Of a stretch of DNA of 64,000 bases, positions 6,661-63,938 are shown in pieces. Every line of letters starts with the position of its first letter. Position 1 is the stretch's first letter. The stretch is from NCBI GenBank assembly GCA_904063045.1, contig CAJFCJ010000002.1:2909891-2973890 (forward strand), given 5' to 3'. Source of the stretch: Dimorphilus gyrociliatus. Its lineage: Eukaryota > Animalia > Annelida. A program made the translations under genes and the position numbers. A model generated the notes under the pieces. It was not told where the DNA came from. It was given only the letters and a program-made list of their open reading frames with translations, and ran no database searches.

Positions 6661-6669
6661 TTAATGCGT

Positions 6670-37949: not shown

Positions 37950-38987
37950 CTAAGAGACAACTTTTACCGCGGTACTTGACGAATTTGGTTGACTTGTTGT
38001 CGCAACTCTAGAATGTGTTGTAAATATCCTTCTAAATCGTTTATAAAATAATTTATTAAAGTAGGCAAACAAGAAGAAATTTGCTGCGGAATTAAAACAA
38101 ACTAGATTATAGGCAAAAAAGGCGAAATAGTAAAATACATGACCACAAGTTAGCATTTGTTTAATATACAAACCTGACATAATTAATCTTATAATTTCGA
38201 AGAAGAAAACTGTTATAAATAATATATTAACGGCTAATAGAGATCTTGTTAGGTATCTAGAATTTTTTAGACGCCTTAGACATATTTCTGAATCATCAAT
38301 TTTCTTCGTTAAAGACTTGATAGTTATTACAGTCAATACGAGAATAATAAGAATGGGCAAAACTATGACTAGTAAATTATGGCCTACTATCCTATATAAT
38401 ATTCCATAGTATTTATTTTTAGATTTCAGTGTAGTCGCCTTTAATTTATAGACATTCAAATTTGGGTCAAATATAACAATAAATTCGAATCTTCTACTAA
38501 TACAATAACATCCTGATATGATCATTAATATAAATACGCATATACACAATTTATTAACAGTTATACGCTTTAGAAACATTGGCTTACATACTGCTATGTA
38601 TCTTTCAATTGATATTAAAACAATAAGCCAACTTGATACAAATCTACAAAAATCTTCCAACGAAAGAGTATTCATCACTCCATAGGCATAGAAATATGAA
38701 TATTTTTCATAAAAACCTTTGTTTAAATAAGCTAACATGCTTTTCAAACCTTTAAAATATAAGTAAAATTGAAGTATTATCGTGTCAAAAAATTCCAGTA
38801 GAATTACCAATATTGCAGTTGTTTTTCTCACCTTTAACATTGAAAACCAAATAGCCGTCGCAATTAAATTAAACAATGTACCAAACGATGGAATAAGGGT
38901 TGCCGTTAGGCCCATAAATAAAAATTCAGACAAAATACAAGATTCTAAGTTATTATTACTTCTATTATTTGTATTGTTCAGTGTCAT
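37950..38987 (-). CDS. Class A GPCR, FMRFamide/peptide-receptor-like orphan a, intronless
   Basis: Seven hydrophobic segments; FGTLFN in TM1; SIERYIAVCKP (DRY variant); NSAANFFLF in TM7. Confidence 0.88.
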   Translation of the reverse strand: MTLNNTNNRSNNNLESCILSEFLFMGLTATLIPSFGTLFNLIATAIWFSMLKVRKTTAILVILLEFFDTIILQFYLYFKGLKSMLAYLNKGFYEKYSYFYAYGVMNTLSLEDFCRFVSSWLIVLISIERYIAVCKPMFLKRITVNKLCICVFILMIISGCYCISRRFEFIVIFDPNLNVYKLKATTLKSKNKYYGILYRIVGHNLLVIVLPILIILVLTVITIKSLTKKIDDSEICLRRLKNSRYLTRSLLAVNILFITVFFFEIIRLIMSGLYIKQMLTCGHVFYYFAFFAYNLVCFNSAANFFLFAYFNKLFYKRFRRIFTTHSRVATTSQPNSSSTAVKVVS

Positions 38988-39452: not shown

Positions 39453-40124
39453 TTAATTGACATCAATAAAATCAACAAATTCAACACTATCTTCATTTTC
39501 TCCTACATCGGCATAAATCATATCAAGATATTGTGCCCTCTTTTTGTCAATTTGAGAGCGGCTATATTGACTAGACGGTTCGTGACCTAGTAGTCTCTCC
39601 TCAAGTATCATCAATAGTATGTAACCACAGTCAACTCCGCTGGATTTTTGTTGATGACATTTCCTCGGAACATGCATGACTCCTTCGTATTCTATCTTGT
39701 GTTGTAGAGCGATTCTTACAAAGTCTTCCCATGATGTATCCCTTTCTGAATCATAATAGGTCCAGCACTTTTTTTCTACACATACTTCAACTAAGCAACA
39801 GTGTCCAACAGGTCTGCTTTTTGGTTTATTAATCAGAATACTATAGCAAGTAGGGTATTCGCATTCTTCAATTTTCGATTTAAAATTCTCTATGGCACAT
39901 TGATTGTTAGGTTCAATAAGGCTAGTTAAAATACTTATCTTCTTGCCAATATCCTTTGGACAGCCATCTCTAAGCTTCTGTGCTATTATCTCTATTTCGC
40001 CAACACTCAATAGTTTGTGCGATTTTTGATTTGGTTTTTGAAGGCATCGCCGTTTTCTCTTGTAACTTTCAAATGAATCGCTGTCGTATAATTGATCTTC
40101 TTCTGATGGTGAGGGTGAATACAT
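39453..40124 (-). CDS. Ulp1/peptidase C48-like cysteine protease b, intronless CDS
   Basis: GHCCLVEV, WTYYDS, CHQQ, VDCGYILLMILE; paralogous to 37045-37713. Confidence 0.75.
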   Translation of the reverse strand: MYSPSPSEEDQLYDSDSFESYKRKRRCLQKPNQKSHKLLSVGEIEIIAQKLRDGCPKDIGKKISILTSLIEPNNQCAIENFKSKIEECEYPTCYSILINKPKSRPVGHCCLVEVCVEKKCWTYYDSERDTSWEDFVRIALQHKIEYEGVMHVPRKCHQQKSSGVDCGYILLMILEERLLGHEPSSQYSRSQIDKKRAQYLDMIYADVGENEDSVEFVDFIDVN

Positions 40125-40697: not shown

Positions 40698-41705
40698 TCA
40701 ATAAGTATTTGTAGTACCAGTCACTTCCATAACATGAACGATATTTCTTGTAAAGAACCTTTTAAACTTTCTATAGAATATCTTATTTAAGAAGGCGAAT
40801 AGAAAGAAGTTGGCAGCTGAATTAAGACAAGTTAAATTGTACGTAATCGATGTAAAATAGAAGAAAAAATGCCCGCAAGTTATCATTTTTTCAACGTATA
40901 ATCCTGATATTACTAATCTAAAAATTTCGAATAAGAATGTACAAATAAATAATATATTAACAGCCATTAGAGATCTCGTAATATATTTTGCATTTACGCT
41001 AAGATGGCTTTGAATTTCTAGTACCTTTCTCGTAAGTGTTCTCAACGTGAAAATCGTTAAAATTACAATTATTGTGAAAGGTAATAAGATAACAATCAAA
41101 TTTTGTAACACTATTCTATATAAGATACCGTACATTGTATTGTTCTTTTTCAAGCTTGTAGGCTTAAGCTTATAGTAGGAATCTCTTTGATCGAAATAAA
41201 TGTCGTATTCATAGGCCCGTGGTATTGAGAAACTAATACCAAATATGGCTAAAAATACAACTGCTATAGTAACTCTTCCAGGTTTGAAATATTTGGCTTT
41301 ATAAGGCCAACAAATTGCAAAATATCTTTCTATAGAAATAAAGACTATAATCCAATTTGATGTTATTCTAGCAAAATTCTCTATTGGTAGGATACGAGCC
41401 ACAGCTTTAGATCTGAAGGAGGCATACACTTTAAAAAAACTTTTATCAACATAACCAATAAAGATATGAAGGCTTTGAAAGATAAGAAAAAATATTAAAA
41501 TTAAACTATCGGATATTTCCAAACAAACAACAAGAATTGTAGTAGCATTGATCTTAGAATTATTCATTGTTAACCAAATAATAGCCGCCACAGTATTAAA
41601 TATTGTTCCAAAAGTCGTAATAAATGTTAAACAAACGCCAGATAGTATAAAATTCCAAAATTCACAATTGAATAATTGTTTTTGAATCGAATTCGTGGTA
41701 TTCAT
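40698..41705 (-). CDS. Class A GPCR, peptide-receptor-like orphan b, intronless
   Basis: Paralog of 37950-38987 (FGTIFN, SIERYFAIC, KYITRSLMAVNILF, TCGHFF, NSAANFFLF). Confidence 0.88.
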   Translation of the reverse strand: MNTTNSIQKQLFNCEFWNFILSGVCLTFITTFGTIFNTVAAIIWLTMNNSKINATTILVVCLEISDSLILIFFLIFQSLHIFIGYVDKSFFKVYASFRSKAVARILPIENFARITSNWIIVFISIERYFAICWPYKAKYFKPGRVTIAVVFLAIFGISFSIPRAYEYDIYFDQRDSYYKLKPTSLKKNNTMYGILYRIVLQNLIVILLPFTIIVILTIFTLRTLTRKVLEIQSHLSVNAKYITRSLMAVNILFICTFLFEIFRLVISGLYVEKMITCGHFFFYFTSITYNLTCLNSAANFFLFAFLNKIFYRKFKRFFTRNIVHVMEVTGTTNTY

Positions 41706-42350: not shown

Positions 42351-42920
42351 ATGGATGAATTTGAAGAAGATAGTTTCTATGGTTCTTTTAATCAGAGTAT
42401 TGATCAAATATCCGATTCAGAACCGGATATGTTCAGCAATCGATATACGCAAGAATGGATGGAAAGAGAAGCTGAACATTTGTTAGCAAAATCTGAAATA
42501 CCACGTTTTCGAACACACGTTTTTATCTCTTGGTTAACAACTCGACCGAATATTTTGGAATATTTTGTGCCTCTTCGATCTCAAAATTTCTTTATACTGT
42601 TAGAAAATCCGAATTATTGCGGATGTTTCCAACATTGCTGTATGGTCGAAATAAATATTCGTGACAGATCGTGGTCGTACATCGATTCGATGCATAATCA
42701 TGAGAAACTAGAACGAATACGTAAAGCGTTTTGGCCAATAATTGATATGTTCTCGCTAGAGTATCAACCAACTAGATGCCATCAACAAAACAATTTATCG
42801 AGCAAATGTTCAATAATGCTACTGAAAACTCTTGAGAGAAAGCTTGTTGAAATAAAAAGCGTTTTGGAGGAGTTCTATGATGAACTTCCAGCGAATGAGA
42901 TATCAATTGAATTTCAGTAG
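42351..42920 (+). CDS. Ulp1/peptidase C48-like protein c (divergent catalytic Cys context)
   Basis: QHCCMVEI, WSYIDSM, CHQQ, then SKCS in place of DCG. Confidence 0.65.
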   Translation: MDEFEEDSFYGSFNQSIDQISDSEPDMFSNRYTQEWMEREAEHLLAKSEIPRFRTHVFISWLTTRPNILEYFVPLRSQNFFILLENPNYCGCFQHCCMVEINIRDRSWSYIDSMHNHEKLERIRKAFWPIIDMFSLEYQPTRCHQQNNLSSKCSIMLLKTLERKLVEIKSVLEEFYDELPANEISIEFQ

Positions 42921-43717: not shown

Positions 43718-45313
43718 ATGCCATACGATGTCAAGGTTGATTGTGATGAAAGTGATGTTTGCATAAGATTTAATGAAGAGCAATTAATCTGTACTATTTG
43801 CTCTTCCACTTGGTTGAATAAGAAACCGCGTTGCTTGCCTTGTGAAGTCAGCCATATTTTCTGTTCAGATTGTTTAGAGCAATTTGCATCAAAAAATAGA
43901 CTTAAAACAGGAGAAAAATTCGGTTGTCCAAATTGTCGAAAACAATATATTTGGCCAAAAAACGGAGTTAAATCTTTTGTATTACTTATGCCTTTTGTTA
44001 GCACTTCCGACTATCGATCGAATGTGGAAATGGAAATGGGCGAAAATGATACGCAACCTTTTTCCGTTCTTAGCGAAGACGAGAAGTTCAGAGAAGAGGA
44101 ATCGAAGGACTTTGAATCAGAAATCATGAACGCCCTCGAATCTTTAAGCGAAGAGCGTCTAAGTGAATCAAAAACCCTACAGAGGGAAGCTCGCAGTCTA
44201 GCTGCAATGATTTATAAGAAACAGTCGGCTTTGCAAGATGAATTGGATGTATATTTTGCGGAAAAAGAGTCAAACTTAAGGTTTTTATTAAAGAATGTTA
44301 AAACATATCAATTATTCCTGAATCGAGCGGGAGTAATGTTTGAACATAATGCAGTCGAGATGAGAAACAAACTGCTAAAGGAAATGAATAAAGTTTTTCA
44401 AACAACGATAAGATTCAAGAGTCTTGTGTCAATTGAGGATTTTGAATTAGGTGAATCAGCTTGCGAAGAATTCGAGCCAACGTATTTTCAAACGGAACTT
44501 GATATTGAAGGAACTATACATAGTATATCCTGCCTCGATAAGCGGCTTTACGTTCTTACTAAAGATAGAAGAGATAAGAGAAAAATTGAGTTTAAAATTT
44601 TTAGAATTGAAAATGAAGCGGAAGACTTTTTGTTCCACTTAGAGACTAATATTGACTCACATTTCAAGATGGTTATCAAAGATAACGTTTACTTGTTGGA
44701 AACTGGTGGAGATAACAATACTTTTCTCAAACTTGAAGTTAATCCTAGTAGAGGACTTTATCATCAATCTCGGTATCAATTGACAGAGGTCGACTATTTC
44801 GCAAAACAATTTAATCATAATCCATGGACACACGTTTGCTCTTCATACAAGATTTTAATGCTATTTAACGATTATGTACTGGAAGTATATAGCTTTGATC
44901 CTAAGATGTCTAAATACGAGAGACTAAAGGTGCTTGAACTTCCCTCATCTACTGGTTTAAGAGATGTTAGAAGTACTGGAAATTATATTTTTATGCTATT
45001 TAATAATGGTTGCCTCTATACGGCTGATATAAAAGACTACGATGAGTTTTCTAAAATTAAAATTTCGGAGAGAGCTAGTTGTATTTCATTTTACGGAAAT
45101 ATTATTGATCCCTTAAAGAATGGTTGTGTTCTACTCTCCAACGGTAAACGTGTTTATATTGTCAATCTAGCAACGAAATGTGCAATATCGTATCCTCTTC
45201 TAAGCATTGTTAAAGATTGCAGGATGATAGACTACGAATTAATTGATAATGACATAATATTTTATTTTGTCATCGGTGCTGATATAATAATCAAAAAACG
45301 TTATATTTTATAA
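43718..45313 (+). CDS. RING-HC + coiled-coil + beta-rich (propeller-like) protein 1, TRIM-like without B-box
   Basis: CTIC..PRCLPCEVSHIFCSDC..CPNC; heptad-rich helical middle; beta-strand-rich C-terminal ~280 aa shared with neighbours. Confidence 0.8.
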   Translation: MPYDVKVDCDESDVCIRFNEEQLICTICSSTWLNKKPRCLPCEVSHIFCSDCLEQFASKNRLKTGEKFGCPNCRKQYIWPKNGVKSFVLLMPFVSTSDYRSNVEMEMGENDTQPFSVLSEDEKFREEESKDFESEIMNALESLSEERLSESKTLQREARSLAAMIYKKQSALQDELDVYFAEKESNLRFLLKNVKTYQLFLNRAGVMFEHNAVEMRNKLLKEMNKVFQTTIRFKSLVSIEDFELGESACEEFEPTYFQTELDIEGTIHSISCLDKRLYVLTKDRRDKRKIEFKIFRIENEAEDFLFHLETNIDSHFKMVIKDNVYLLETGGDNNTFLKLEVNPSRGLYHQSRYQLTEVDYFAKQFNHNPWTHVCSSYKILMLFNDYVLEVYSFDPKMSKYERLKVLELPSSTGLRDVRSTGNYIFMLFNNGCLYTADIKDYDEFSKIKISERASCISFYGNIIDPLKNGCVLLSNGKRVYIVNLATKCAISYPLLSIVKDCRMIDYELIDNDIIFYFVIGADIIIKKRYIL

Positions 45314-45805
45314 GAAACACTAAAGAGTATTAAAGTTTTTGACAGTGAAAAAAGAAACGACGATTTTTTTTCATTAAAAAGAAAAAAAAACAAAACATTC
45401 TTGATTGAAAAAAGTTAAATATTAATATTTTTTTTCTATTCTTTTTTTAAATATTCATATTTTTTTTGTAAAAAAAAAAAAAGAAAAAAAACAAAAATTG
45501 TCCAAAAAACTTTTTTTTTGGTAATTATTGATTTCATCTTTCTTTAGTTTAAAGTTCGTTTGCTATTACTTTCTTTTTAAAAGTTTTATTTTTCAATAAA
45601 AGTTTTATTAGTTTCATTGAAAGTGATTTTTAAATAAGATACTATTTGACAATAAAAGGACTTTGATTCTAGTACGCTACATAAATCAATTTAAGTCTTG
45701 TTATGTAAAAATAGTAAGGAACAATGAAATATCGGATTTCCCATTAGCGATATATGTTAAAAGTAGAAGGATATTAGAATTAGCTTTTGTTTAGATATAG
45801 CTTTG

Positions 45806-47302
45806 ATGGATGGTGTAATGTCCTCGGAGGTTGATCAACTTTGTGGTATTTGCAAACTTCCATGGAATGATCGCAATCCTCGAGTTTTACCCTGCGACAG
45901 GAGACATATTTTCTGTTCTAACTGCTTAGATGAGTTGATAAAAAAGTTCTGCCTTAAAGTTGGTGATTATCTTATCTGTCCGAATTGTGGAACAAAGCAT
46001 ATGCTCACCGAAAAGAAGACTGAAGAATTTATACGTCTTTGCCCTTTTAGGGGATTTCTAGGTAAAATGGATAATGTATCCTTAAAATTTCGAGAGTTTT
46101 TGAACAACTACGAGTCAAGATTATTAAGCATTCATCATTCTTTGGAAGATGCTGAACAGAGGCAATTAAGTCTATTGAATAAGGAAATAAATAAAGTGCA
46201 ACTTTTTCTAGATTCAGAAAAATTTACGCTAACCAAAGAAATAGAAACATTTAAAAAAGGAAAACAATTGATAGCGAAGGAAATGTTGGATAAAATCAAA
46301 ACGTTAGAGAATATGAAAGCTTATGAATTTAATATTTCTGATTTTGAAAACATAATTTTTGATCTGGAATGTAAATTTAATAGAATCGATAATGTACAAA
46401 TTCGATTTAAAACGTCACCAATTCTCGATCTATGTCGATTTGGGCAAATAATATTTGAAGATGATGGATTAGTTACACCTATATTATCTTTAACACGCGT
46501 TTTCACTTTCGAAGGGAGTTTTCAAGATTCTTACGCAACTAGTAGCGGATTCTACATTCTTACTAAGAATTTAACGGATGAATTTTCATATTATTTTAAT
46601 CTTTATAAAGTTGATAAGGAAAAAAGCTTTTCATGTGTCTGTAGCTGGAAGAGAAGAGAGAATATGTCCTACAGAATGTCCGTAAAATCATCTGTATTTT
46701 TACTACAGATGACTAATGAGGGAGAAATCAGTAGATTTAATGAAACAGACACTCAAGTAAAAATAGTACCTGTCGACTGTATGAATTGTCCTGCAGGATA
46801 TTGGAAGAGTATATGGTGTTTAGAGAAAGCCAATATATTCTTCAACAAATCAGCTATGGAGATATACATTAATCCAGTACTGGCAGTCAGGTTTGCTAAA
46901 GTTAATCTACCAAATGAGACAGATATTTTGGATTTAAAGTATATAAAGCCTCGCATATTTATTTTGACAGAAGACTCTCTTGTCTATACGCTCAATCTTA
47001 TGCAATTTCCATTAGCTTTCGATTTCGTTCACATAAAAGAACAAGTTAAATATAATATAAACTACGTAGATATTGCTAGAATGTTGGCAAAAGGTTACAC
47101 GCTTTTAAGTAACCAGGACAAGATATTCTGTATCAATACAGAACAATGTAAAGGAACGTCGTATAGTCTTAAAGAAACATTCGGGGATTGTAAGAAATTG
47201 GAATATTATTTATCATGGCAGGAAGTGCGATTATATTTAGTGAATAAGTCAAATAAAGTTATTGTTAAATGCTTTCATCGATTTTCAGATGTTAATAAAT
47301 GA
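45806..47302 (+). CDS. RING-HC + coiled-coil + beta-rich protein 2
   Basis: CGIC..PRVLPCDRRHIFCSNC..CPNC; same architecture as 43718-45313. Confidence 0.8.
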   Translation: MDGVMSSEVDQLCGICKLPWNDRNPRVLPCDRRHIFCSNCLDELIKKFCLKVGDYLICPNCGTKHMLTEKKTEEFIRLCPFRGFLGKMDNVSLKFREFLNNYESRLLSIHHSLEDAEQRQLSLLNKEINKVQLFLDSEKFTLTKEIETFKKGKQLIAKEMLDKIKTLENMKAYEFNISDFENIIFDLECKFNRIDNVQIRFKTSPILDLCRFGQIIFEDDGLVTPILSLTRVFTFEGSFQDSYATSSGFYILTKNLTDEFSYYFNLYKVDKEKSFSCVCSWKRRENMSYRMSVKSSVFLLQMTNEGEISRFNETDTQVKIVPVDCMNCPAGYWKSIWCLEKANIFFNKSAMEIYINPVLAVRFAKVNLPNETDILDLKYIKPRIFILTEDSLVYTLNLMQFPLAFDFVHIKEQVKYNINYVDIARMLAKGYTLLSNQDKIFCINTEQCKGTSYSLKETFGDCKKLEYYLSWQEVRLYLVNKSNKVIVKCFHRFSDVNK

Positions 47303-47979
47303 ATTAAAAATCCTTTAAATCAAGTTAAATAAATAATTTCGTTATAATACAAAACTAACAAAAAAATTTTATTAAAAATTGAGTACGATCCTATTACTTA
47401 AAAAAAAAAGCTAATAGAGACTAAAAGCGCCATCTTCCTTTGTTTTATAACATATTTGTACCTTCTACCGGTTTCTACTACTAAGAACATTCTCAAGATC
47501 AGACATTACATGGTCACGGGGAAAATTTGACATATTTCAAAAAGGACGTTCAGCTATCGAATTAACTTCAAAGTATTTCAATAATAACCAGGAAATTCTA
47601 TTCATAAAAGTAAGTTTATTATCAAATTTGGAACATTCTTGCAATAAAAAGTTAGATAATATAAATTAAAAGTATTAATTTTTTATTGCAATGAGTAATT
47701 AATCATGGAAACTGAAGTTTTTGTCAAAGCTAAATTGAGTAAGAATTAGATAAAAAGTATTAATTCATTATTACAAATATAAATATACTGTATATTATCT
47801 ATTGACATATATTATAACTATTAGACCTTGATTACCATATTTTTCAAGGTGAAGGAACTTATTTTTGGAAAGTTTTTTTGACAAAATTTTACTAGAGTAG
47901 AACTCTATAAAGTCATTTCTTTTACTTCTCTTTTCCTCAGGCAAATGTTTTATTGTTACATATATTTTCGATAGGGAAT

Positions 47980-49224
47980 ATGGCAGAGTTTAGCAGAACT
48001 TTTGAAGAACTTCACGAAGTTAACGTCTTCTTCAATGAAAATGATGTATTGTGTGGTATATGTAGAGCCCCATGGATTACCAAATATCCTCGATGTCTTC
48101 CTTGCGAAACTTCACACATATTCTGTTCAAAATGCTTGGATAGATTGATAAATGCCAGCTTACTAAAAGGATATTTATTATGTCCGATATGTCGAAAAGA
48201 GTATCCTCTGACCGATAAAGGAGTGAAAGCATTTTCCCTTCTATCACCCTTCGTCAACTGCTCACTTGCTAGTGGTCGTGATTATCAGCCATTGTACAAA
48301 AGCAATATAGAGATTTGTGACGATAATCCAATTAGTCAAATTCCGTCGGTTTCGGATGACTTCTCAATTCGTGATGATACATTCCAGAGATTTAGAAGTC
48401 AGGCTTCTATAAAATTTTTACGATTCGAAAGCAGAGTGAATCACATGTATTGTTTAAATGGGATTCCTTATTGCCTAACTGAAGCTAGAAAGGCTGGACG
48501 ATTCAAATATACAATTCTTCGACTTTTAAACGATAATCGTGCCGCGGAGAAGGTCGCTTCTTGGACATCAGCTACTGCTTGCCAACGCATTGCTCCAAAC
48601 AAAGATATCTACCTTTTAACTGGATTTGGCTCACGAAGAAGGATAAAGCGTTTAAAGTTAAAAGAAGAGGGGGGTGACAGAAGTAATTCAGACAACAGTT
48701 CATTGGAATTAAAAGACGTGGAGACTATATGTCCTCGTTTGTCACATCTTACCCCGTGCGCTGATGGTTTTGTTCTTATTCATGATAAGTATTTGGAATT
48801 TTATACGATACGACCATTGCGCCTTTCAAGAAAAATCCCATTACCTACATTAAGAAGAGTGGTAACTGTAAAATATGCCAAATCACAAGTGTTTGTTCTA
48901 TTTGATAGAGGTCAACTTTTCTCAATCGATATTAAAACGAAACCATCCGAATTTCAACCTGTGAACCTTACCTTTTTAGAGAATGTCACACATTTCCAAA
49001 ATGAAGTTTTCAACAGTATGAAACACGGTAAAATACTGATGACTGATAGAAAGTGGATATTCGTCATAACTCTAGAAACAAAGACAGCTGTATGCTTGCC
49101 TCATCAGCCAATTTTTGGTAGTTTTACACTACTGGAATACTTTATAACTAAGAATGAAATTGTCTTTTATGTGGTTGCAAAGGAAGGTTTAATAGCCATA
49201 AGATATTTTGATTTTACACAGTAA
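47980..49224 (+). CDS. RING-HC + beta-rich protein 3 (coiled coil absent)
   Basis: CGIC..PRCLPCETSHIFCSKC..CPIC followed after a short linker by the family C-terminal domain (NKDIYLL, LEFYTIRPL, LLEYFITKNEIVFYVV). First ATG at 47980. Confidence 0.8.
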   Translation: MAEFSRTFEELHEVNVFFNENDVLCGICRAPWITKYPRCLPCETSHIFCSKCLDRLINASLLKGYLLCPICRKEYPLTDKGVKAFSLLSPFVNCSLASGRDYQPLYKSNIEICDDNPISQIPSVSDDFSIRDDTFQRFRSQASIKFLRFESRVNHMYCLNGIPYCLTEARKAGRFKYTILRLLNDNRAAEKVASWTSATACQRIAPNKDIYLLTGFGSRRRIKRLKLKEEGGDRSNSDNSSLELKDVETICPRLSHLTPCADGFVLIHDKYLEFYTIRPLRLSRKIPLPTLRRVVTVKYAKSQVFVLFDRGQLFSIDIKTKPSEFQPVNLTFLENVTHFQNEVFNSMKHGKILMTDRKWIFVITLETKTAVCLPHQPIFGSFTLLEYFITKNEIVFYVVAKEGLIAIRYFDFTQ

Positions 49225-49856
49225 TTTAAGAAGGAAAAAAGCTATTTGTCATTTATAACTTTAAGATACTTTATACGATTTTTTTTTCAACAAACTGAAA
49301 TAATCTTCATTTAAATCCTAATCTGCAGCATAAATCTTATTAAAAGAAAAGTTATTATTTTTATCAATCTACTTTAAAAGTAAATGCATATATATACATG
49401 AAAACTTTTCAATTATGTATAATGAATAGTGGCTTCTATCATCTTCTAAAATGAGTTAAAATTTATTTCCATAATTTCCTTTGAAATTCAATAAATTTTT
49501 ATATTTTTTAAATGAAAACTTTGCATTTGAATACAAGTCAACTTTGTATGATAAAAAAATAGAAGAGCATTAACACTTTTGCTAAAACAATCTTATTGGC
49601 GCCATCTTGAACTGTATTGAGAATACTCACCAATTGTAGACCAATTATGTCAGTAGTGTCCTGAGTTTGAATACTTTTTTATCGTTCCAATTACAAAATT
49701 AATCCTGATTAACGAATTGTTCTAAGGTAAGACACCCATTATAAGGAATATAATGGATATAGATTAGCGCTCCTAGCGTTGGAATTAGAATTCTTTATTG
49801 ACTTCATTCACGACAGGTTCATCGGTCGAAAAGCTAACGAGTGAAAAGAGGGAAAA

Positions 49857-51467
49857 ATGAGTAACGACAGCCGCAGAAGCGAGAATGAAATGGATATAAG
49901 CTTTCACGTTGCCGATGACCAATTCGTTTGCAGCTTATGTTCCGATTCTTGGTTGAATAATATTCCACGATGTCTACCTTGCGAAAATAATCACATCTTC
50001 TGCTCTGATTGTCTATTGGAATTTGCAAACTCAAATAATATAAAGAATGGCGATAATTTCTTTTGTCCAGTATGCAATGAAAAACATACTTGGCCGGAAG
50101 ATGGTGTTGAAGCTTTCGGAATTGTAAATAACGATACGAAAAATTCACAGAGCGAGTCGGATTCGTCTTTTATGCAGGATTCGTTAAAGTGCGATACAGT
50201 AGAGGTTTTGGGTAAATCTTTTTCGTTGAGATCCAGTCATAAAGATTCCAGATCGTTTCGAGAGAGAATCTTAGCAGCTTTAGAAAAGCTTCAGGAAGAA
50301 AGGGAGAAAGAATATAAAGAATTAGAAAATGAAAGTAAAAATTTGCATCTATTGATAAATAGTAAACAGCAAAGTTTGCAGAGCATCATTAATAGATTTT
50401 ATATGAATAAGGAGGATAAGCTTAGGCATTTACTGCAACAATTCTCGGATGATGATGATCAAGAAGTCGAAGAAGAGATAGCCGACACCGAAATAGAACA
50501 TAAAAGAGATTTAATAAATAGGATGAAAACTGTATTTAGAAGTACAATTAAATTTTCAAGACCTAATCTTATCGACAATTTCAATATGGGCGAAGTTTTT
50601 TTAATAAACAACGAAGATGGCGAAAGTGATGATTGTCTTTTTCAATCAACAAGTGAAATTCTAACTATTACGTCATCAAAGCAAGCATTTTACGTTTTAA
50701 CAGAACAAAGCCTACAAAATACGTTCATTTATAGAATTTTTATGTTACCTATCGCAGGAAGTAAATTTGTTTTAATAAAATCTTGGACAAGCGATGAGAA
50801 ATTTCATTACAAAATGGCAGCTAATAAAGATTTATACCTACTAGAAGTTGGATCATCAGCTGGCCTGATGAGATTAAGAGTTAATGGTAATAAGGATTTA
50901 TGTCCGGAAACAGAATTCGAAAGATTTAAGATTACTGTTCACAAGCCTTCTCCTCTATTAAGGAAGATCTATTCGAAGACGTATTCAACAAACCTTGCCT
51001 GTTCAGATACAACATTGGTTTTAGTAAATAGCAACGGTGTTCTTGAAAAATATTCAACTGAACCATTGGAGAAAATTAGAAGTATGAGACTACCTGCCAA
51101 AAGTGCCGTCGCTGATATACGATGCTCTAATCTTTATATCATAGTATTATTTCAAGGTGGTAGTGTATGTTACACATATATAAACTCTTTGAAAACTAAT
51201 TTCGAATATCTAAGAAAAATGAATCTTTCAAGTATATTCGATATAGAAGGATTTATCATTCCACCACTAAAAGATGATGGCTTTATTATGTCGGACAAAT
51301 CAAATGTTTACAATGTAAATCCATCAAAGTCAATGGTTGAATATTGTTCATTCACCAGAGTTTTTAAGGACGTCATGAGATTTGATTATAATGTAACAGA
51401 AAATCATATTTTTCTATATACAATAACAGACTCAAATGCCGTTATCGTAAATCGTTTTAAATTGTAA
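49857..51467 (+). CDS. RING-HC + coiled-coil + beta-rich protein 4
   Basis: CSLC..PRCLPCENNHIFCSDC..CPVC; NKDLYLLE, LEKYSTEPL, DIRCS. Confidence 0.8.
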   Translation: MSNDSRRSENEMDISFHVADDQFVCSLCSDSWLNNIPRCLPCENNHIFCSDCLLEFANSNNIKNGDNFFCPVCNEKHTWPEDGVEAFGIVNNDTKNSQSESDSSFMQDSLKCDTVEVLGKSFSLRSSHKDSRSFRERILAALEKLQEEREKEYKELENESKNLHLLINSKQQSLQSIINRFYMNKEDKLRHLLQQFSDDDDQEVEEEIADTEIEHKRDLINRMKTVFRSTIKFSRPNLIDNFNMGEVFLINNEDGESDDCLFQSTSEILTITSSKQAFYVLTEQSLQNTFIYRIFMLPIAGSKFVLIKSWTSDEKFHYKMAANKDLYLLEVGSSAGLMRLRVNGNKDLCPETEFERFKITVHKPSPLLRKIYSKTYSTNLACSDTTLVLVNSNGVLEKYSTEPLEKIRSMRLPAKSAVADIRCSNLYIIVLFQGGSVCYTYINSLKTNFEYLRKMNLSSIFDIEGFIIPPLKDDGFIMSDKSNVYNVNPSKSMVEYCSFTRVFKDVMRFDYNVTENHIFLYTITDSNAVIVNRFKL

Positions 51468-52820
51468 CAATACTATTAAAGCTAAAACGAAAGAGTAACA
51501 GTTTTGTAGATTCGATTTTACTATTAAAAGTAATTATAATATTTAAATATTCATTTCCAAGTATTCAGCTGGAAAAAAAAAACTTTTTACTGATTTCTTC
51601 TATCTATTACTCTCCATCTTAGTATTTGAGTTCACAGTGAATAAAACGAACTCTATTTCATTTTTTTTATACTTTGCTCTACTTCCGATATTTTATTCAA
51701 CCAGTGTCAGTTTAAAGGAAGATAAATAGATTTAAAAAGGAAGGAATACAGTTTTCATGGCTTTTTGTTTAAAATCTTTGTTATCATATTATTCAAAAAG
51801 AAATACAAATATCTATATAAGACGTATTTCGAAGAATACTAAAATTCTGCGTCTAAATATCCTTTTCCTCGTCTCTCGTCTCCATCACTCTGTCAGCAGA
51901 TAGTCGGAAACTTTTAATCAAATTTAGTTTTCTAGATTATTATATACGCTGTTCTCTCATTCTCCTCGTTTCCCCATTCCTTTAGCTATCTCTTTTATAT
52001 ATCTTTCTCCCTTTGTGTTCCCTGTCTATGATCTGGAACAAATTTTCATTGTTTCCCTATTTTATTATATCTCTATCTAAAATTGTAATTCTCTTTTAGT
52101 TCTATTGAACGTAATATTTTTAGAAAAAGAGAAAAAAACCTCTATTTTAAATTTAATCTACCTTTTCCTGGAAATAAATTAAGAATATAAAATTAGCTTA
52201 ATAACGCCATTTTCCTTTCATTTAGACTATAAAAGTATACTTGTCTTTCGAAGTGTTCACATAGCAACTTTTTTAATGAGGCTATAATAATATTTTCTCT
52301 TTGTTACAATTACAATGATAGCTGATAAACTCCGTGACCGCTTGAATATAGTTTTTACACAATACGTATTGGAGTTAATGTACCAGTGGAAAAAATTTCT
52401 TAAAGTATAATAGACAATCCCTTAAGATGAAATATACATTCAAGTTGAAAAAAGATAATATCATAACGAAAAAGTGTGTAGTTTGTTTAGAGTAAATGAA
52501 TACGATATTATCAGTTATTAAAGAGTGCATAGTGTAAGAAAAGCGTTTAAACAATCTAACACAATCGTGATTTATCTATAATTATTGCTGGATAATTTTC
52601 TTGTAAGGAAAGACTTCTTTTTTTATCTGGTTCTTTGAAAAATAAATATAACACTTTCGTCGGATAGAATATAACTATCGAGTCACGTGATCAAATCCAA
52701 TATTGCACTTATTGTTTTTATGTTATCAGCGTTGGCACTGCTCAATACAAGTAATATAGTATTGAAATTTCTAAATTGCAATAATTTTAACAAATTTTTC
52801 TTTTTAACTAATTTATACAA

Positions 52821-53588
52821 ATGAATTACGAAGGCAGTATGTTTGAGAACAGAATCAATATTACGTTCACAGAAGGACAGCTATTATGCGCAATTTGTAC
52901 AAGACCCTGGCTAAACAACTCTCCGAGATGTTTGCCATGCGAAATAAGCCATATATTCTGTTCGGAATGCATAGAAGAGTATGGAAGAATCAATCTATTG
53001 GAAGAAGGAAGTACTTTCTCATGTCCAGTTTGTCGAGCTAAACACTATTGGCCAAGAAAAGGTGTACAGTCCTTTATTCTTTTGACTCCATTTGTTGATT
53101 GTTGTACTACATCTTTCGCAAATGAAGAATCCGAATCGACTAGTCATTTTCAGCAAAAAACTGCTCATAAAACAAAGTCAAATACTAATGAAAAAGATAT
53201 ACAAGATATACAAGAATTAAGGATAAAAATAAGCAAGACTTTAGAACAATTAGAAAAAAGGAGGGACATAGAATGGAAGCTTTTAGATGATGAAATAAAA
53301 AATATCACTCAATTAATAGAACAGAGAAGATTAATCCTTCGAGATCAATTAAATATATTCTATAAAGAAAAGGAATCAAAGTTAAGAGACTTATTGAACG
53401 ACGCTAAAATTTTGCAATCATTTAGAATAACAGCAAGTGATAGATTTAAAAAATGCTACGAAGAAATGAGACAAAGACTCTTTAAAGAAACTATTGAAAT
53501 ATTTAATAGCTATGCCGTCTTTAGTAAATCTTATGATAAAAGTGCATTAAATTTAGGCGAAATTATTAAAAATTCAATGGATATTTAG
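52821..53588 (+). CDS. RING-HC + coiled-coil protein 5 (C-terminal domain absent)
   Basis: CAIC..PRCLPCEISHIFCSEC..CPVC plus coiled coil. Stops just after LNLGEI, the motif that precedes the beta-rich domain in paralogs. Confidence 0.72.
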   Translation: MNYEGSMFENRINITFTEGQLLCAICTRPWLNNSPRCLPCEISHIFCSECIEEYGRINLLEEGSTFSCPVCRAKHYWPRKGVQSFILLTPFVDCCTTSFANEESESTSHFQQKTAHKTKSNTNEKDIQDIQELRIKISKTLEQLEKRRDIEWKLLDDEIKNITQLIEQRRLILRDQLNIFYKEKESKLRDLLNDAKILQSFRITASDRFKKCYEEMRQRLFKETIEIFNSYAVFSKSYDKSALNLGEIIKNSMDI

Positions 53589-54136
53589 CCATAAAAACAC
53601 GCACAACGGTATTAAAATTTAAAATTAAAGAATGAAGAAAAAATGGCTCCGTTTCCAATTGAATTTTAATAAAGACATGTGGTAAACTGTTAAAACTATA
53701 TTTCTTTTAAAAGCATACTTTTATATGATTTTATTATCGTATGTAGTACTGAAAGAAGTCTTTTTAATTATATGCAACCAACTATACTTGTGGAATAAAA
53801 TTCAATGAATAGAATGTTTCGTTTGCTCTTTTTTTCTTCTATGGAACGCTCTACAACAGGAAGTTGGAAGTAAAGCGCACCCTAGTATTCATTTATTGTA
53901 AGGTTTCAGAGCTAAAAATTCTCTAATCATTATAATAATTAACTGTATACTCTTTCATCAAATAATTTATTTGAGAAGATAGAAGAGAGAGAGACAGACA
54001 GACGGACGGAGAGTGAGAGAGAGTCAAGTGGAAACTGAAAATTCGGTAAGTAAAGATAACAATAGTTGCATACATTTACTTTACTTTATTTTTATAGTAC
54101 TTTAGTTCTCCCTAAAAGAAAGGTAAAACAACGGAA

Positions 54137-55000
54137 ATGAACGAGAATAATACGGATAAAAATCAATCAGAAAGTCCTCATGACGATTGCACAATAGCAC
54201 CTATCATTTTACGTAAAGAACACAACATAGTAAAACACTGTTTGGCTGATTGTACAATCATTTCAACGGTTTCTTCTGTATGTAACATCTACTTTTGGAT
54301 TGTTAAAAATAATAGAAATTCAATTGTTGAAGTTCAATGTAATTCGTCTTATGGATATCATTTATATCATGATAATGAAATTTCAATTATTGATATATCC
54401 GTTGATAAAGATTTATACGTTTTGGAAAGACTTTTGGATCATACGAATATTAGACGATTGGAATGTGTTCAGGCTAATTATCAACTAAGCTTTATTGGAA
54501 AAGTTGAAGCTAATAATCCAGTATCTTTTACATGTATCAATGATGGATTCTTGATACTATGCAATCGAACTATTTATAAATTCTCCCGTAATCCCTTTGA
54601 GAAACTCTGGTTAACGCAATTACCTTTCGAAGGCAATGTTACAAGCTTGAAATGTGAAAAGTTTAACTTATTCGTTCTTTGCGAAGATGGTCATATTTTT
54701 TACGCAAACATTCTTACTCCAAACGAAAATTTTTTTCAAATATCACTTAATTTCTCACCGTTTTTCTATCCAAACTCCTCTAATCCCACACTTCCCCTAC
54801 TTGACTCGAAAGAGTTTATTTATAATCAAAGCGTTATTTATGTTATAGATCCAGATAGGCAAGAAGCGGATTGCTATAGTGTGTTGAAACTTTATAAATC
54901 ATTTAAGATATTTGGATGTGCCAGATTTGAGAGAATTTCTTTGTTCTACATTGTTCAAGAAGATGATGATATACGAACAATTTTAACCGTGTCTTATTAA
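54137..55000 (+). CDS. Stand-alone beta-rich (propeller-like) domain protein 6 of the same family (no RING or coiled coil)
   Basis: DKDLYVLE, KFSRNPF..LP, SLKCEKFNLFVLCEDGHIF, IYVIDP, ISLFYIV align by eye to the paralog C-termini. Own 5'UTR intron at 54046-54097. Confidence 0.7.
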   Translation: MNENNTDKNQSESPHDDCTIAPIILRKEHNIVKHCLADCTIISTVSSVCNIYFWIVKNNRNSIVEVQCNSSYGYHLYHDNEISIIDISVDKDLYVLERLLDHTNIRRLECVQANYQLSFIGKVEANNPVSFTCINDGFLILCNRTIYKFSRNPFEKLWLTQLPFEGNVTSLKCEKFNLFVLCEDGHIFYANILTPNENFFQISLNFSPFFYPNSSNPTLPLLDSKEFIYNQSVIYVIDPDRQEADCYSVLKLYKSFKIFGCARFERISLFYIVQEDDDIRTILTVSY

Positions 55001-55335
55001 CTATCTCCGCCTTACTCTTCGTGATGTTTTGTTATGGGTGTATAATCTTTAAAAATATGTTTACATATATACTGTATATATACAGTGCATAAAAGTAGCC
55101 TTGTACTAGTTTGCTACTGCTTTATTTATATAAATTAGTTCATTATGTGGTGAGTGGCTTAAATATAAAGTAAGTAAAGTTTGAGGACTATATTTTCAAA
55201 TTTTGGCGGTTTTAAAACAAAATATTCAACTAACTAACTATTAGCGTCATCTATATAATTACCTACTTAAAATTGTTTTATTCTTCACACCTCTTTTAGA
55301 TTACTCAGTCCGACTTCCTTTCGAAATATTTTCTA

Positions 55336-56889
55336 ATGGCTTCCCAGAGAATAGAGGAAGAAGTTAATGTTAAATTTCAAGTTCAACAGGTTAAATGTCC
55401 AATATGCAGATCTGCGTGGCTAGATAGACAACCTAGATGTTTACCTTGTAAAGTTATGCACATATTTTGTTCAGAATGCCTGGAGGAAGTCGGACACCAA
55501 TACGAATTAAAATTCGGTGATAAATTTCCTTGTCCAATTTGCAGAAAGGAGCATACTTGGCCGGAAGATGGGGTAAACTCTTTTTCTGTTCTCACTCCTT
55601 TCGTTCAATGTAAAACTGTTTACGATAACAAGAAAGAAGGACCGAGTTTAATAGAATTGAATACTAGCAGTACTGCAGAAAACGATTATAAACATCTGGA
55701 AAAACAGATTTTAGCTGAATTGGAAGAATTAGATAAAGATAGAAAGAGAGAATTCGATTCATTAAATAATCAAACGAAAAACCTATCAATATTAATTCAA
55801 AGTAGAAAAGATTATCTTCAAAATGAGTTAGATGATTTTTTTACAAATAAGGAAACGAAACTTAAGAGTTTATTAAAGGATATTAGTAATTTTGAAATGT
55901 TTCAATATCAAGCGGGTAAAATGTTTGAAAGTAACCTAAAGGAAATGAAATCAAAGCTATTGAAAGAGATAAAGAGAATTTTAAAGAGTAAGGCTCAATT
56001 TCAAAAATGGGATCACTTAAATTTTAAATTAGGTGAAATAGTTTACAATAAGGAAGAAGTTATTAGTCTAGAGGATACATTTAATATCGAGGGAAATATT
56101 TATAGAATAGCTTGCGGAGATAAATCTTTGTATATATTAACAAAGGACAATTCAAAGGGTTATAACATATATACAATTCTCTCTTTGGGACAAGATCAAA
56201 AATCGATTAATAAGTTGTATACATGGAAAACTAACAGTAACGAAAATTATAGAATGTCGGCTAATAAGGAACTATATCTGGTAGAGATTGAACCTTCATA
56301 CGCACTGTTACGTTTAACAACGCATGGAGATAGTTTCAAATTAAAGGCTCTCCATAAACTTATCCAAAAAAATGGTGGCTTTTCCGATCCGTATTGGACA
56401 AATATCGCTTCTACTGAGGATGGTATTATAGTTGTTAGTGCTAATTGGATTGAAAAATACTCAATACAGCCTCTCAAGAGAGTTTGGTCAATGTCTGCTC
56501 CCACTGAATTTGCAGTCAATGATCTCAGGTGCGACGAAGAACATTTATATATTCTATTTTCCAATTCGACGATATATCGCATAAATCTCAACAATAAGAA
56601 CGTTGATACTCTTCCTATCGAAAATATTGATAGAGATTTGCTATTTAATGATGATATCATTAATAATTTGGTAAGGGGAGGTTGTCTCCTCTCAAACAAA
56701 AGAAATATTTACGTCATCGACGCCTCGAAGAGAGTAGTTTATTGTCATAAGTTAATTAAAGTTTTCGGAAGTTGTGCTTTAATGGATTATCGCCTAGACG
56801 AAGAAAATATCGTTTTTTATACAGTTGATAAATCCAATATTTTAACAGTAAAGCAATTTAATAGACAAAGTGTCAAGAGGGACGAGTAG
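55336..56889 (+). CDS. RING-HC + coiled-coil + beta-rich protein 7
   Basis: CPIC..PRCLPCKVMHIFCSEC..CPIC; NKELYLVE, IEKYSIQPL, NDLRCD, MDYRLDEENIVFY. Confidence 0.8.
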   Translation: MASQRIEEEVNVKFQVQQVKCPICRSAWLDRQPRCLPCKVMHIFCSECLEEVGHQYELKFGDKFPCPICRKEHTWPEDGVNSFSVLTPFVQCKTVYDNKKEGPSLIELNTSSTAENDYKHLEKQILAELEELDKDRKREFDSLNNQTKNLSILIQSRKDYLQNELDDFFTNKETKLKSLLKDISNFEMFQYQAGKMFESNLKEMKSKLLKEIKRILKSKAQFQKWDHLNFKLGEIVYNKEEVISLEDTFNIEGNIYRIACGDKSLYILTKDNSKGYNIYTILSLGQDQKSINKLYTWKTNSNENYRMSANKELYLVEIEPSYALLRLTTHGDSFKLKALHKLIQKNGGFSDPYWTNIASTEDGIIVVSANWIEKYSIQPLKRVWSMSAPTEFAVNDLRCDEEHLYILFSNSTIYRINLNNKNVDTLPIENIDRDLLFNDDIINNLVRGGCLLSNKRNIYVIDASKRVVYCHKLIKVFGSCALMDYRLDEENIVFYTVDKSNILTVKQFNRQSVKRDE

Positions 56890-59745: not shown

Positions 59746-60099
59746 TTATTTTACGTATGCTTTTTCAAGTATTTTCCTTTGGGCGCTTGATAGAACGACA
59801 TTCTCAGCGTCCTGGCCATCGATAACAGCCGTCATGAATGCTATGTAGGTTATAGCCAGTCGAAGGGTTTCAATTCTTGATAAACGTTTCTCGTAGGCGA
59901 AAGTAGGAACACGTTTTCTCAAAGTGTCAAAAGCTTCGTTGAGATTAAACATTCTCCGTCTTTCCCTGATATTAGCTGCTCTTCTCTGAGCTTGAGTAGG
60001 CACTCTCTTTCTCTTCTTTTCGGGTCCGAAATTCTGAGTGGGATAGTAATTTTGCCATGGTTCACACTGCCAGTATACATCAGGATATCTTTCATTCAT
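59746..60099 (-). CDS. FERD3L: bHLH transcription factor Fer3/FERD3L (Nato3)-like, single exon
   Basis: [50 protein letters not shown], the Fer3-subfamily bHLH signature ([27 protein letters not shown]). Confidence 0.92.
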
Positions 60100-61803: not shown

Positions 61804-63938
61804 TTATTGAACTCTAACGGGAAGAGCAGGGAAGTCGTCCTCATTTCTGACATTAGGTGCCCTTACTTTTTTGCCTGGACCACCTCGTCCGCCACTTCCA
61901 AAAGATCTTCCCGGTCTTCCGCCTGCTCCCGATCCTGCTCCGACTTCTCTTCTACCACGGTCACCTGGTCCTCTACCTCGTCCTCTGCCTCCACGTCTAT
62001 CATCCCGGTACGTAATTTCAATATTTAGTGTTTTCTTTTTCTTTCCTTCCTCTTCCTAAAATAAAAACATTGGCATGGTAAATAAAAGGTATATAGAAAT
62101 TATCGAATAGTAGGATTAGCGCTAAATGACTCATAAAAGTTCTTATAACTTCAAAAAAGCGCCATCTGAACGCAGAAATATTAAGTATTTTACGAAGATC
62201 AGATCACATGTGCCAGAACATTCTTTAGATTTTCTGACCGGACGACCTTCAGGTAGAAAATTTGCTATCGATAAGATATACTGGCCTCATCGTAATCTTC
62301 ATCGTCCTCGTCGTCTTCTTCGCCATCCTTTTTGTCGTCTTTCTTCTTCGCTAATTGAAATGTATCTTTCCATTGTCTTTCGTCAACACCTTCGCCAGCC
62401 TTGCGGATGTTGAAGTCCTTTTTCGGTTGTTTGTCCTTTTGCATTTTCCTATATTCGTCCAGTGTCATTTGTTTAACTTCAGGTTCAGTCGGTACCGATT
62501 CGTCTTTGATTTCTTCCTTCGAGACATTTGGGTCCTGATTTTCGGGTTCATCGGTTGAAGTATTCATTTCCTGTTTCTCTTCTGTTAAAGATGCATCGAT
62601 TTGATCATTTGTACTTCCCCAGTTGGCTCGTCCACCGCCTTGTTTCTTGTCCTGATGTTTAATACCGGTCTTGTCTGATCCAGAATGTCGGTCAAAAACC
62701 CGCTTTCCTTCTCTTCCAGCAAAAGTACCTCTGGTACCTCTGCCTCTTCCTCTTGCAGGTCGAGACTTATTTTCGTGATCGTTAGCTTGTTTTTCGCCAA
62801 ATACTTCAAATTTTCCGCCAAATCCATCGTCCTTGTTTCTTACAGGACCGCCTCCTCGTCTTGGCCGATTTGCCATGTCTGTTCCACGTGTTTTTCCCGC
62901 TGAAAATTTATTCTCTTTTGGAGAACGATTCTCACGAGAAATCTTTTCGTTTTCATCTCTGGCCTTCTTCGGACGATTTTCGTCACGATTTGCCAATTCT
63001 TTTTCTAGAATAAGAAAGATTATTAATTTATGTCTTATCCAGAAATATTTGTATGATTTGGATGTTAATCTCAAATATCTAACTATGTGTATTCATATGA
63101 AACATGCGTTCCTTCCCAAACTATTGAAAGTTTCGCGAAGCAACATTTGTTGACCAGTATACAGAGAACCCAGCATTGTTATAACTTTTCTATTACACGT
63201 AATTTAAGCTTTATATTGTGTTCTGAAATGTACCATTAACCATTTATCGATCTATAAAGCAGAATGGATGGAAAATGCTAATTAACTTAATACTCGTCTG
63301 TAATAAATTAAAGTTGGCAGATAAAGCGCTATCTCTATTCAAAGACATACGCTTTTGAGCACGTGTAGAGTCGTGCGTAAATTATGTTCTTAACTTAGGA
63401 GTTTTATTGTAATGCCTTTTCGTGCATGTTTTCAAGCCAAAAGTTTTCTAAGATAGACACTGGCTGATTAATATATATTCATATTGAACCAAGTAGAAAA
63501 CACGTGAAACGTGAAATTAAGCTCTAGTGGTGAATTTTCGAAAAGATGTTTATATAAACGATTGTCTTTGTTCAACACATGCTATTTCTTTAAGAAAATG
63601 TGTTAAGAAGCCGAATTTGAGGACACGAGGCACTCCTCGCCTTACCGCCAAAATTGTCACATGGCAACGAAATGAACACGTGAATTTTTATAATTACCCG
63701 AAGTTTTCTCTTTTCTTTCTTCGCCTGTCTTGTTCTTTTGATTAGTAGTTACCTCTGTCGATTTTTTGGCCGTCTTTGGCCTCTCGACTTTGGTATTAGT
63801 CTTCGGAACCTTTTTTGCCTCCTTCTCTGCTTTATTTTTACATTCTACTTGTTTTAGTAGCTCGCTTGGATCCGCCTCCTCATTATCCTCAAACGACGCG
63901 TACCTATTGTTAATTTGCACGCCGTATATGCTGTTCAT
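61804..63938 (-). CDS. SERBP1: SERPINE1 mRNA-binding protein 1 / HABP4 family (3 coding exons)
   Basis: MNSIYGVQINNRY; GKRVFDRHSGSDKTG; KKQGGGRANWGS; KQMTLDEY; FNIRKAGEG; RGG tail; APNVRNEDDFPAL; stop at 61804-61806. Confidence 0.93.

Follow-up and report, generated by a model that had tools for sequence, protein, structure and literature searches.

An old, conserved tandem array of B-box-less RING genes with predicted six-bladed propellers in Dimorphilus gyrociliatus

We analyzed a tandem gene array on the plus strand of the annelid Dimorphilus gyrociliatus genome, at positions 43718-56889 of a 64,000-nucleotide (nt) stretch of contig CAJFCJ010000002.1 (positions 2,909,891 to 2,973,890; hereafter the window), and found that it is transcribed, old, stable and under purifying selection. 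The array holds seven long open reading frames (ORFs) at six loci, 335-1353 nt apart. We favor, at a probability of about 0.6, the reading that these are six old paralogues of a lineage-restricted family, descended from a TRIM2/3/56-like RING ligase with loss of the B-box, which would serve different endogenous targets as a fixed set of E3 ligases or adaptors. The N-terminal C3HC4 RING would recruit the E2~ubiquitin conjugate, a long helical hairpin would build a TRIM-like antiparallel coiled-coil dimer, and a C-terminal six-bladed propeller of NHL size would bind the target. Each paralogue's private propeller may thus pick its own endogenous target, either a protein or, as in TRIM-NHL proteins, an RNA. 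We infer the ligase activity, the dimerization, the NHL descent of the propeller, the kind of target and the cooperation of the split pair 5a/5b. By analogy, the mode of action may resemble that of TRIM-NHL proteins or of COP1-type ligases composed of RING, coiled coil and propeller.

An earlier note, made from the sequence alone, had reported seven same-strand ORFs in these 13 kb, all of which are present at their coordinates. Its count of seven family members stands as a count of ORFs; the loci number six, the fifth ORF (5a) encoding RING and coiled coil, the sixth (5b) the propeller, and the third lacking a coiled coil. The genes, with lengths in amino acids (aa), are as follows.

Gene 1, 43718..45313 (+): 531 aa; RING aa 25-73 (nt 43790-43936), helical region about aa 120-228, predicted six-bladed propeller aa 259-531 (nt 44492-45310)
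Gene 2, 45806..47302 (+): 498 aa; ORF from 45803, true ATG at 45806; RING nt 45842-45988, helical region about aa 96-196, predicted propeller nt 46496-47299
Gene 3, 47980..49224 (+): 414 aa; ORF from 47953, true ATG at 47980; RING nt 48052-48192, non-helical linker of about 60 aa, predicted propeller nt 48412-49221
Gene 4, 49857..51467 (+): 536 aa; RING nt 49929-50075, helical region about aa 122-228, predicted propeller nt 50634-51464
Gene 5a, 52821..53588 (+): 255 aa; RING (nt 52887-53033) and coiled coil only, with a disordered linker at aa 92-119 and an 84-residue helix plus return helix at aa 121-229
Gene 5b, 54137..55000 (+): 287 aa; a 33-aa leader, then propeller only (nt 54236-54997)
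Gene 6, 55336..56889 (+): 517 aa; RING nt 55396-55542, helical region about aa 109-217, predicted propeller nt 56074-56886

The start codons at 45806 (gene 2) and 47980 (gene 3) are confirmed by orthologues. Chance ORFs were ruled out, given reading frames of about 500 codons in 31% GC DNA and matches to the family hidden Markov model (HMM) at E values of 1e-55 to 1e-92. Identity among the paralogues within the array is 18-35%. Gene 3 is short of the roughly 100 residues that form the coiled coil of its paralogues, which gives it a malin-like architecture of RING and propeller.

Domain composition of the array proteins

A full C3HC4 RING was found in six of the seven ORFs (C-x2-C-x13-C-x3-H-x2-C-x2-C-x15/17-C-x2-C), with the motif PRxLPC-x3-HIFCSxC inside it. 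The sharing of this motif with all zinc ligands kept had been noticed before, and the eight ligand positions are indeed invariant across the six window genes. In a 17-member family alignment, seven Cys are invariant and the His is retained in at least 90% of members (Arg in member P0008). The Cys of "PRC" is not a ligand, being Val in gene 2 and Trp in the gene 4 orthologue. The residue after the last Cys is Arg in most members and in TRIM2, Gly in gene 2 and Asn in gene 4. The C-x3-H spacing, described earlier as unusual, is a two-residue insertion relative to the C-x-H of TRIM2; it is unusual compared with the closest relatives, but falls within the canonical RING range of C-x1-3-H.

A profile of the N-terminal half, searched against Protein Data Bank (PDB) sequences, matched TRIM2 (E = 2.7e-12), TRIM3 (1.7e-9), TRIM56 (7.6e-9) and TRIM5 (3e-5), with further TRIMs, RNF135 and RNF4 scoring weaker. 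The RING alignment extended into the flanks (TRIM2 "IDKQFLICSIC...CPVCRQTSILPEKGV") and included the CPxCR..lPekGV motif. Using an AlphaFold2 (AF2) model of 5a, the seven best Foldseek matches were all the TRIM2 RING (32-37% identity), and an exhaustive structural comparison (VIA) likewise ranked the TRIM2 RING first (Z = 8.6), with TRIM56 at Z = 7.8 and 28% identity. Judged by sequence, the RING is of the TRIM2/TRIM3/TRIM56 type, and with all zinc ligands kept in a TRIM-type RING, the E3 ligase repertoire proposed in the earlier note appears plausible. TRIM2 RING activity needs dimerization via helices that flank the core RING (PMC9732051). The family is similar to TRIM2 in the sequence of these flanking helices, but the 5a model is not confident in the flanks. 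A word-index protein search, which is too insensitive for tracing ancestry, returned with the gene 6 RING region itself, its orthologue and one canonical RING-B-box-coiled-coil fragment (P0046), and with gene 4 only itself and its sibling orthologue (78%).

Using Pfam, we found no zf-B_box match at E ≤ 1 among the seven ORFs, and the post-RING linker (about residues 92-119) is disordered, poor in Cys and His and free of any Cys/His cluster, which agrees with the absence of a B-box described previously. Lacking the B-box that the TRIM/RBCC definition calls for, the array proteins are not TRIM proteins by definition, nor are they classifiable as NHL proteins by sequence. In the AF2 model of 5a (mean predicted local distance difference test score, pLDDT, 82.7), a folded RING is followed by the disordered linker (92-119), an 84-residue helix (121-204) and a return helix (207-229), both helices at pLDDT 90-98; the model also has two short strands. 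VIA aligned these helices with the coiled coil of Brat over 105 residues, the longest helical alignment, at a Z of 7.3 that is not significant alone.

The earlier note had left the C-terminal domain in no named sequence family, and our searches bear this out. Pfam searches of all ORFs gave no match for this domain, and none of 22 family propellers matched PF01436 (NHL) at E ≤ 10. A family propeller profile run against PDB sequences retrieved no NHL chain at E ≤ 10, its best match being a phage tail spike (E = 0.027) that we regard as noise. The scattered C-terminal motifs reported before are present in the alignment consensus (NKDLYLLE, LEKYSxxPLE, VxDxRC and DYxLxENxIxFYxV).

The propeller-like fold suggested earlier is supported by an AF2 model of the C-terminal 277 aa of gene 4, built with seven sequences as input (pLDDT 87; predicted template modeling score, pTM, 0.86). 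In this model, 23 strands build six blades of four strands each, the last of which is completed by the N-terminal strand in a velcro arrangement. Against the PDB, VIA placed the Brat NHL domain at the top (Z = 17.2, 231 of 279 residues aligned), a lead over the Cdc20 WD40 domain (Z = 16.3) that lies within the tie range of the tool. Further matches were the NHL domains of TRIM71 (15.8), TRIM2 (15.7), LIN-41 (15.6) and NHL-2 (15.5) and the WD40 domain of RFWD3 (14.4). Target coverage was about 83% for the TRIM71, TRIM2, LIN-41 and NHL-2 NHL domains versus about 62% for the seven-bladed WD40 matches. Foldseek and Atlas listed generic propellers first (Nup43 WD40, Tectonin and others) at TM-scores of 0.5-0.7, which indicates a fold class and not a family.

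Other propeller families were also considered. No WD40 match was found in the family using Pfam, and the model is six-bladed, not seven- or eight-bladed. RCC1 homology over the whole domain was rejected, because bacterial RCC1 proteins match one blade only, repeatedly. These matches reach whole-protein E values down to 5e-10 at profile positions of about 136-180 (alignment A2, blade 4). The RCC1 Pfam model has no match in the family propellers, and the six-bladed model departs from the RCC1 layout of seven repeats of 50-60 aa. The blade-4 motif V.D.RC....IFVLF..G (gene 4: 51040-51170) attracts RCC1 matches on its own, and no NHL or WD40 protein appears with it; such matches appear to reflect a generic blade pattern. 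Overall, the C-terminal domain is modeled as a six-bladed, NHL-sized propeller (about 270-277 aa) that is an orphan by sequence.

Orthology, selection and range of the family

We further compared the array with contigs of a sibling taxon (L001 and L002, from two samples; Logan runs SRR23372229 and SRR23372216), which reproduce the whole neighborhood. In the sibling locus, a G-protein-coupled receptor (GPCR) gene and then a Ulp1-like ORF precede the array, whose ORFs measure 531, 561 (about 496 if read from the likely ATG), 412, 536, 242, 269 and 515 aa. All seven ORFs therefore have 1:1 syntenic orthologues, the split pair and the coiled-coil-less gene 3 included. Amino acid identity to the orthologue is highest in gene 1 (86%), followed by gene 4 (79%), gene 6 (76%), gene 5b (68%; orthologue of 269 aa), genes 2 and 3 (57% each; the gene 3 orthologue has 412 aa and the same architecture) and gene 5a (56%). 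The 561-aa call for the gene 2 orthologue (L001 5884-7569) begins with a codon other than ATG, inside a hydrophobic leader that is probably non-coding; translation likely starts at the Met preceding "NNSNCGIC", which gives about 496 aa.

Synonymous sites are saturated relative to the sibling taxon, with proportions of synonymous differences (pS) of 0.67-0.79 and of nonsynonymous differences (pN) of 0.07-0.27. The raw pN/pS ratios are 0.09-0.38 (5a, 0.38; 5b, 0.25; gene 3, 0.38), and they overestimate omega because saturation compresses pS. In 30-codon windows, no propeller segment exceeded a pN/pS of 0.8, and the maxima fell in the disordered post-RING linker. Among the domains, conservation is strongest in the RING and weakest in the helical and linker region, with the propeller in between or equal to the RING. 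Mismatches between orthologues show an even distribution, at 0.27 in strands, 0.31 in presumed top loops and 0.34 in bottom loops, the loop faces being assigned by strand order and not by coordinates. A maximum-likelihood tree of 29 propellers recovered six orthologue pairs, each with a Shimodaira-Hasegawa-like approximate likelihood ratio (SH-aLRT) support of 100, on stems of 0.9-1.95 and tips of 0-0.4 substitutions per site. Such stems, much longer than the tips, place every duplication long before the two species separated.

Two claims of the earlier note are not supported by these results. Rapid tandem expansion and evolution does not agree with 1:1 orthology at saturated pS, low pN/pS and duplications that predate the split. 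A variable domain that recognizes diverse, possibly pathogen, substrates finds no backing in a propeller that is no more variable than the rest and has no hypervariable region. The note had also named a contrary outcome, ordinary orthologues of a described family under purifying selection; the purifying selection was found, but the described family was not.

The same data bear on whether the array is an innate-immune sensor or restriction repertoire, whose variable propellers recognize pathogen molecules and diversify under conflict like TRIM5, TRIM22 and the fish finTRIMs. The family is lineage-restricted, tandem and multi-copy, with paralogues only 18-35% identical, and the window also contains a duplicated BIR/IAP pair. 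TRIM56, moreover, is an antiviral TRIM, and its RING is among the three closest. However, neither lineage has gained or lost a gene despite saturated synonymous divergence, the propeller is not the fastest-evolving part, its segments stay below a pN/pS of 0.8, orthologue changes fall evenly on strands and both loop faces, and the neighboring GPCR has a similar rate (76% identity). The gain and loss of genes and the positive selection on the recognition domain that mark TRIM5/finTRIM-type immune repertoires are thus not seen between these two taxa. Nothing in this analysis supports an immune role and the conservation pattern speaks against an arms race, so we consider this explanation unlikely.

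The isoelectric point (pI) of the propeller ranges from 4.8 to 9.7 among the paralogues (genes 2, 3 and 4, 8.7-9.7; gene 1, 6.4-6.6; 5b, 4.8-5.1, with 5.1 in the window), whereas within each orthologue pair the character (acidic, near-neutral or basic) is kept. A charge that is specific to the paralogue and stable between orthologues fits different, stable ligands. The basic propellers of genes 2, 3 and 4 could also point to RNA-binding post-transcriptional regulators in the manner of the TRIM-NHL proteins Brat, LIN-41/TRIM71 and NHL-2, in which the top face of the propeller would bind mRNA motifs and the RING would be secondary. NHL domains that bind RNA, those of Brat, TRIM71, LIN-41 and NHL-2, are among the best structural matches, the RING is nearest to those of the TRIM-NHL proteins TRIM2/3, and strong long-term conservation fits developmental regulators. 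Yet there is no sequence similarity to NHL repeats, and the propellers of 5b and gene 1 are acidic or neutral; we hold this mode of action to be rather improbable, but a serious alternative for the basic propellers.

To define the range of the family, the propeller profile was searched against 1.84 billion representative proteins, which yielded 41 proteins at E ≤ 1e-3 and 13 at E ≤ 1e-10. Ten of these that matched in multiple stretches were scanned, and nine of the ten proved to be RCC1-repeat proteins. Among the other 31, the 20 examined were all D. gyrociliatus (CAD51...) or Logan proteins, six were window genes or L001 orthologues, and five were weak matches outside the examined set. At the sensitivity of HMMER, the family is restricted by sequence to D. 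gyrociliatus and a close relative, in line with the lineage-specific family proposed earlier. Family members P0008, P0009 and P0012 share a 4,604,474-bp contig with the window genes. Other members lie on a 4.55-Mb scaffold; they were recovered by the propeller profile of this array and have in common with it the TRIM2/3/56-type RING and the domain plan, whereas the present array has a RING at all six loci and a conserved fission pair. In the tree, the window genes group with P0008-P0013 and P0019 in a major branch apart from the members on the 4.55-Mb scaffold, although this branch is weakly supported. The D. gyrociliatus genome paper and its supplements, searched for TRIM, RING, NHL and ubiquitin, do not mention the family.

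Transcription and the split pair 5a/5b

Two public runs from two studies contain the stretch, namely X1, a coral metatranscriptome, and X2, whose library type is not recorded. X1 contigs match at 99+% identity and lie almost wholly within the coding sequences (CDSs) of 5a, 5b and 6, the gene 6 contig reaching 12 nt past the stop. The X2 contigs are taken to be RNA-derived because of two exact GT..AG skips and a depth of 200-350 in just 60 Mb of data. One of them (2008 nt) is colinear with gene 4 over the compared part, 51000-51761, and continues 294 nt beyond the stop. Another (1275 nt) covers 52785-53897, skips 53898-53978, covers 53979-54045, skips 54046-54097 and continues to 54192; since it is colinear through 5a, the 5a CDS is unspliced and its stop is retained. 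The intronless CDSs reported earlier are thereby supported for genes 4 and 5a, and the possibility that the ORFs are untranscribed, also raised then, does not hold.

The features between the two halves of the fifth locus are as follows.

Conserved non-coding island, 53857..53890 (+): about 30 nt, just upstream of the first spliced donor (53898)
Two GT..AG introns, 53898-53978 and 54046-54097 (+): these flank a 67-nt non-coding exon between the 5a stop and the 5b ATG

The pair 5a/5b is a fission pair, split exactly at the domain boundary, and it is the most unusual feature of the array. The 5a stop (53586) falls about ten residues short of the point at which the propeller of the paralogues begins, and the spacer of 548 nt between 5a and 5b contains stops. 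A single gene 5 fused by splicing was rejected, because 5a terminates before the first donor is reached and the exon with the 5b ATG has an in-frame TAA (54113-54115) ahead of that ATG. The contig cannot prove one single transcript, and the D. gyrociliatus genome paper reports no operons or trans-splicing (PMC7854359).

The island (CAGGAAGTTGGAAGTAAAGCGCAC...) is kept between the window and L001 while the rest of the spacer is unalignable, and it is unique in the window. It is likely a promoter or the first non-coding exon of 5b. On this interpretation 5b would have its own promoter there, two introns in its 5' untranslated region (UTR) and an overlap with the 3' UTR of 5a. A spike in X1 depth (28.6) was also observed at 53985-54183, on AG/ACAG-rich low-complexity spacer, and probably stems from unrelated low-complexity matches.

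A gene in two ORFs with a stop-containing gap, next to a gene 3 that is short of about 100 residues found in its paralogues, might suggest that 5a/5b and gene 3 are broken remnants of a partly pseudogenic array. We consider such decay very improbable. In L001 and L002, despite saturated synonymous divergence, 5a, 5b and gene 3 are all found intact and of unchanged architecture; their pN/pS ratios are 0.38 (5a), 0.25 (5b) and 0.38 (gene 3). In addition, 5a lies in a high-depth spliced contig, 5b is matched by metatranscriptome contigs, and the break coincides with a domain boundary. A rather doubtful idea, which we put forward tentatively, is that 5a and 5b form a working two-part ligase from adjoining or overlapping transcription units. 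The two could reassemble non-covalently via the C-terminal linker strands of 5a, or could act on other members of the family, with 5a joining heterodimers as a partner that lacks a propeller and 5b competing as a decoy.

Known systems, surroundings and implications

The closest known systems are the class VII TRIM-NHL proteins (TRIM2 and TRIM3; TRIM71/LIN-41, Brat and NHL-2). Like these, the array proteins have a RING sequence nearest to TRIM2/3 and the post-RING CPxCR..PekGV motif, and a long helical coiled-coil region precedes a propeller of about 275 aa, modeled as six-bladed, that best matches an NHL domain. In contrast to them, the array proteins have no B-box and no filamin domain, carry C-x3-H instead of C-x-H and show no NHL repeat signature in the propeller, while their CDSs are intronless and the family is lineage-restricted and tandem. 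TRIM56 is the third-best RING match to the family, and its C-terminal region is only "NHL-like" and poorly recognized by repeat profiles. Unlike the array proteins, TRIM56 retains a B-box, and no similarity between the two was detected outside the RING.

A single exon encodes malin (NHLRC1). This ligase, related to TRIM32, combines a RING with an NHL domain and has neither B-box nor coiled coil (PMC3160408). As a TRIM-NHL derivative pared down in this way it provides the nearest precedent, and its combination of RING and propeller recurs in gene 3. However, malin occurs in vertebrates and a cephalochordate and has recognizable NHL repeats, whereas most array members keep a coiled coil, and we found no sequence link between malin and the array family. 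COP1/RFWD2, RFWD3 and TRAF7 also combine a RING and coiled coil with a C-terminal propeller as substrate receptor. Their propellers are WD40 domains of seven blades that Pfam clearly recognizes, and their RINGs do not resemble that of TRIM2, which makes them analogues and not relatives.

The array lies in AT-rich animal DNA (about 31% GC in the window), which also encodes a dynein heavy chain, two BIR/IAP genes, rhodopsin-type GPCRs and a bHLH gene. The array ends at gene 6, and the downstream genes are on the opposite strand: a single-exon bHLH gene at 59746-60099 (-) (HLH, E = 2.4e-19) and a HABP4/PAI-RBP1 (SERBP1-like) gene at 62265-63074 (-). Directly upstream of the array lie two rhodopsin-type GPCR genes (37950-38987, -; 40698-41705, -), in alternation with three small ORFs of Ulp1/C48-like type (37045-37713, +; 39453-40124, -; 42351-42920, +), of which only one has a match to Pfam Peptidase_C48, and a weak one (E = 0.0035). 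The Ulp1-like ORF at 42351-42920 is 42% identical between the taxa (pN/pS 0.47) and the fastest-evolving of the neighborhood. The BIR-domain (IAP-like) genes form a tandem pair (4694-6037 and 8811-10394) with near-identical N-terminal regions of about 330 aa; the second (8811-10394) has a C-terminal RING and an additional middle segment. Between them lies a 178-aa ORF (6619-7155) in a GC-rich patch (45% GC).

Several points weigh against reading the array as a panel of ligases or adaptors for endogenous targets. Ligase activity is a prediction from sequence. The Pfam RING matches are all sub-threshold (best 24.5 versus a gathering threshold of 27.3 bits). A Gly or Asn after the last RING Cys, as in genes 2 and 4, may weaken E2~ubiquitin activation. 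The propeller has no relation to NHL domains that is detectable by sequence, so that descent from TRIM-NHL proteins is plausible but unproven, and the structural lead of the Brat NHL domain over WD40 amounts to a tie. With saturated synonymous divergence, the omega values are rough upper bounds, and episodic or site-specific positive selection is hidden. Finally, the RNA nature of the X2 contigs is deduced from GT..AG joints and depth in a run of unrecorded library type.

If the favored reading is correct, a lineage with a very compact genome keeps many TRIM-derived ligases without a B-box, with a propeller that has drifted past sequence recognition. The array also shows that a tandem set of this kind can reach a great age and stay stable while purifying selection acts on every copy. 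The finding is of moderate value, as the kind of protein is already known. It also serves as a caution that a tandem, divergent RING-propeller family need not be an immune repertoire. If 5a and 5b do act as a two-part ligase, the pair would be a regulatory layer built into the array; alongside gene 3, which has no coiled coil, it would reveal a TRIM scaffold that is being dismantled into separately evolving modules within one lineage. With its conserved split, the 5a/5b pair offers a natural test of whether catalysis and target recognition in a TRIM-like ligase can still function in trans, with their modules on separate proteins.

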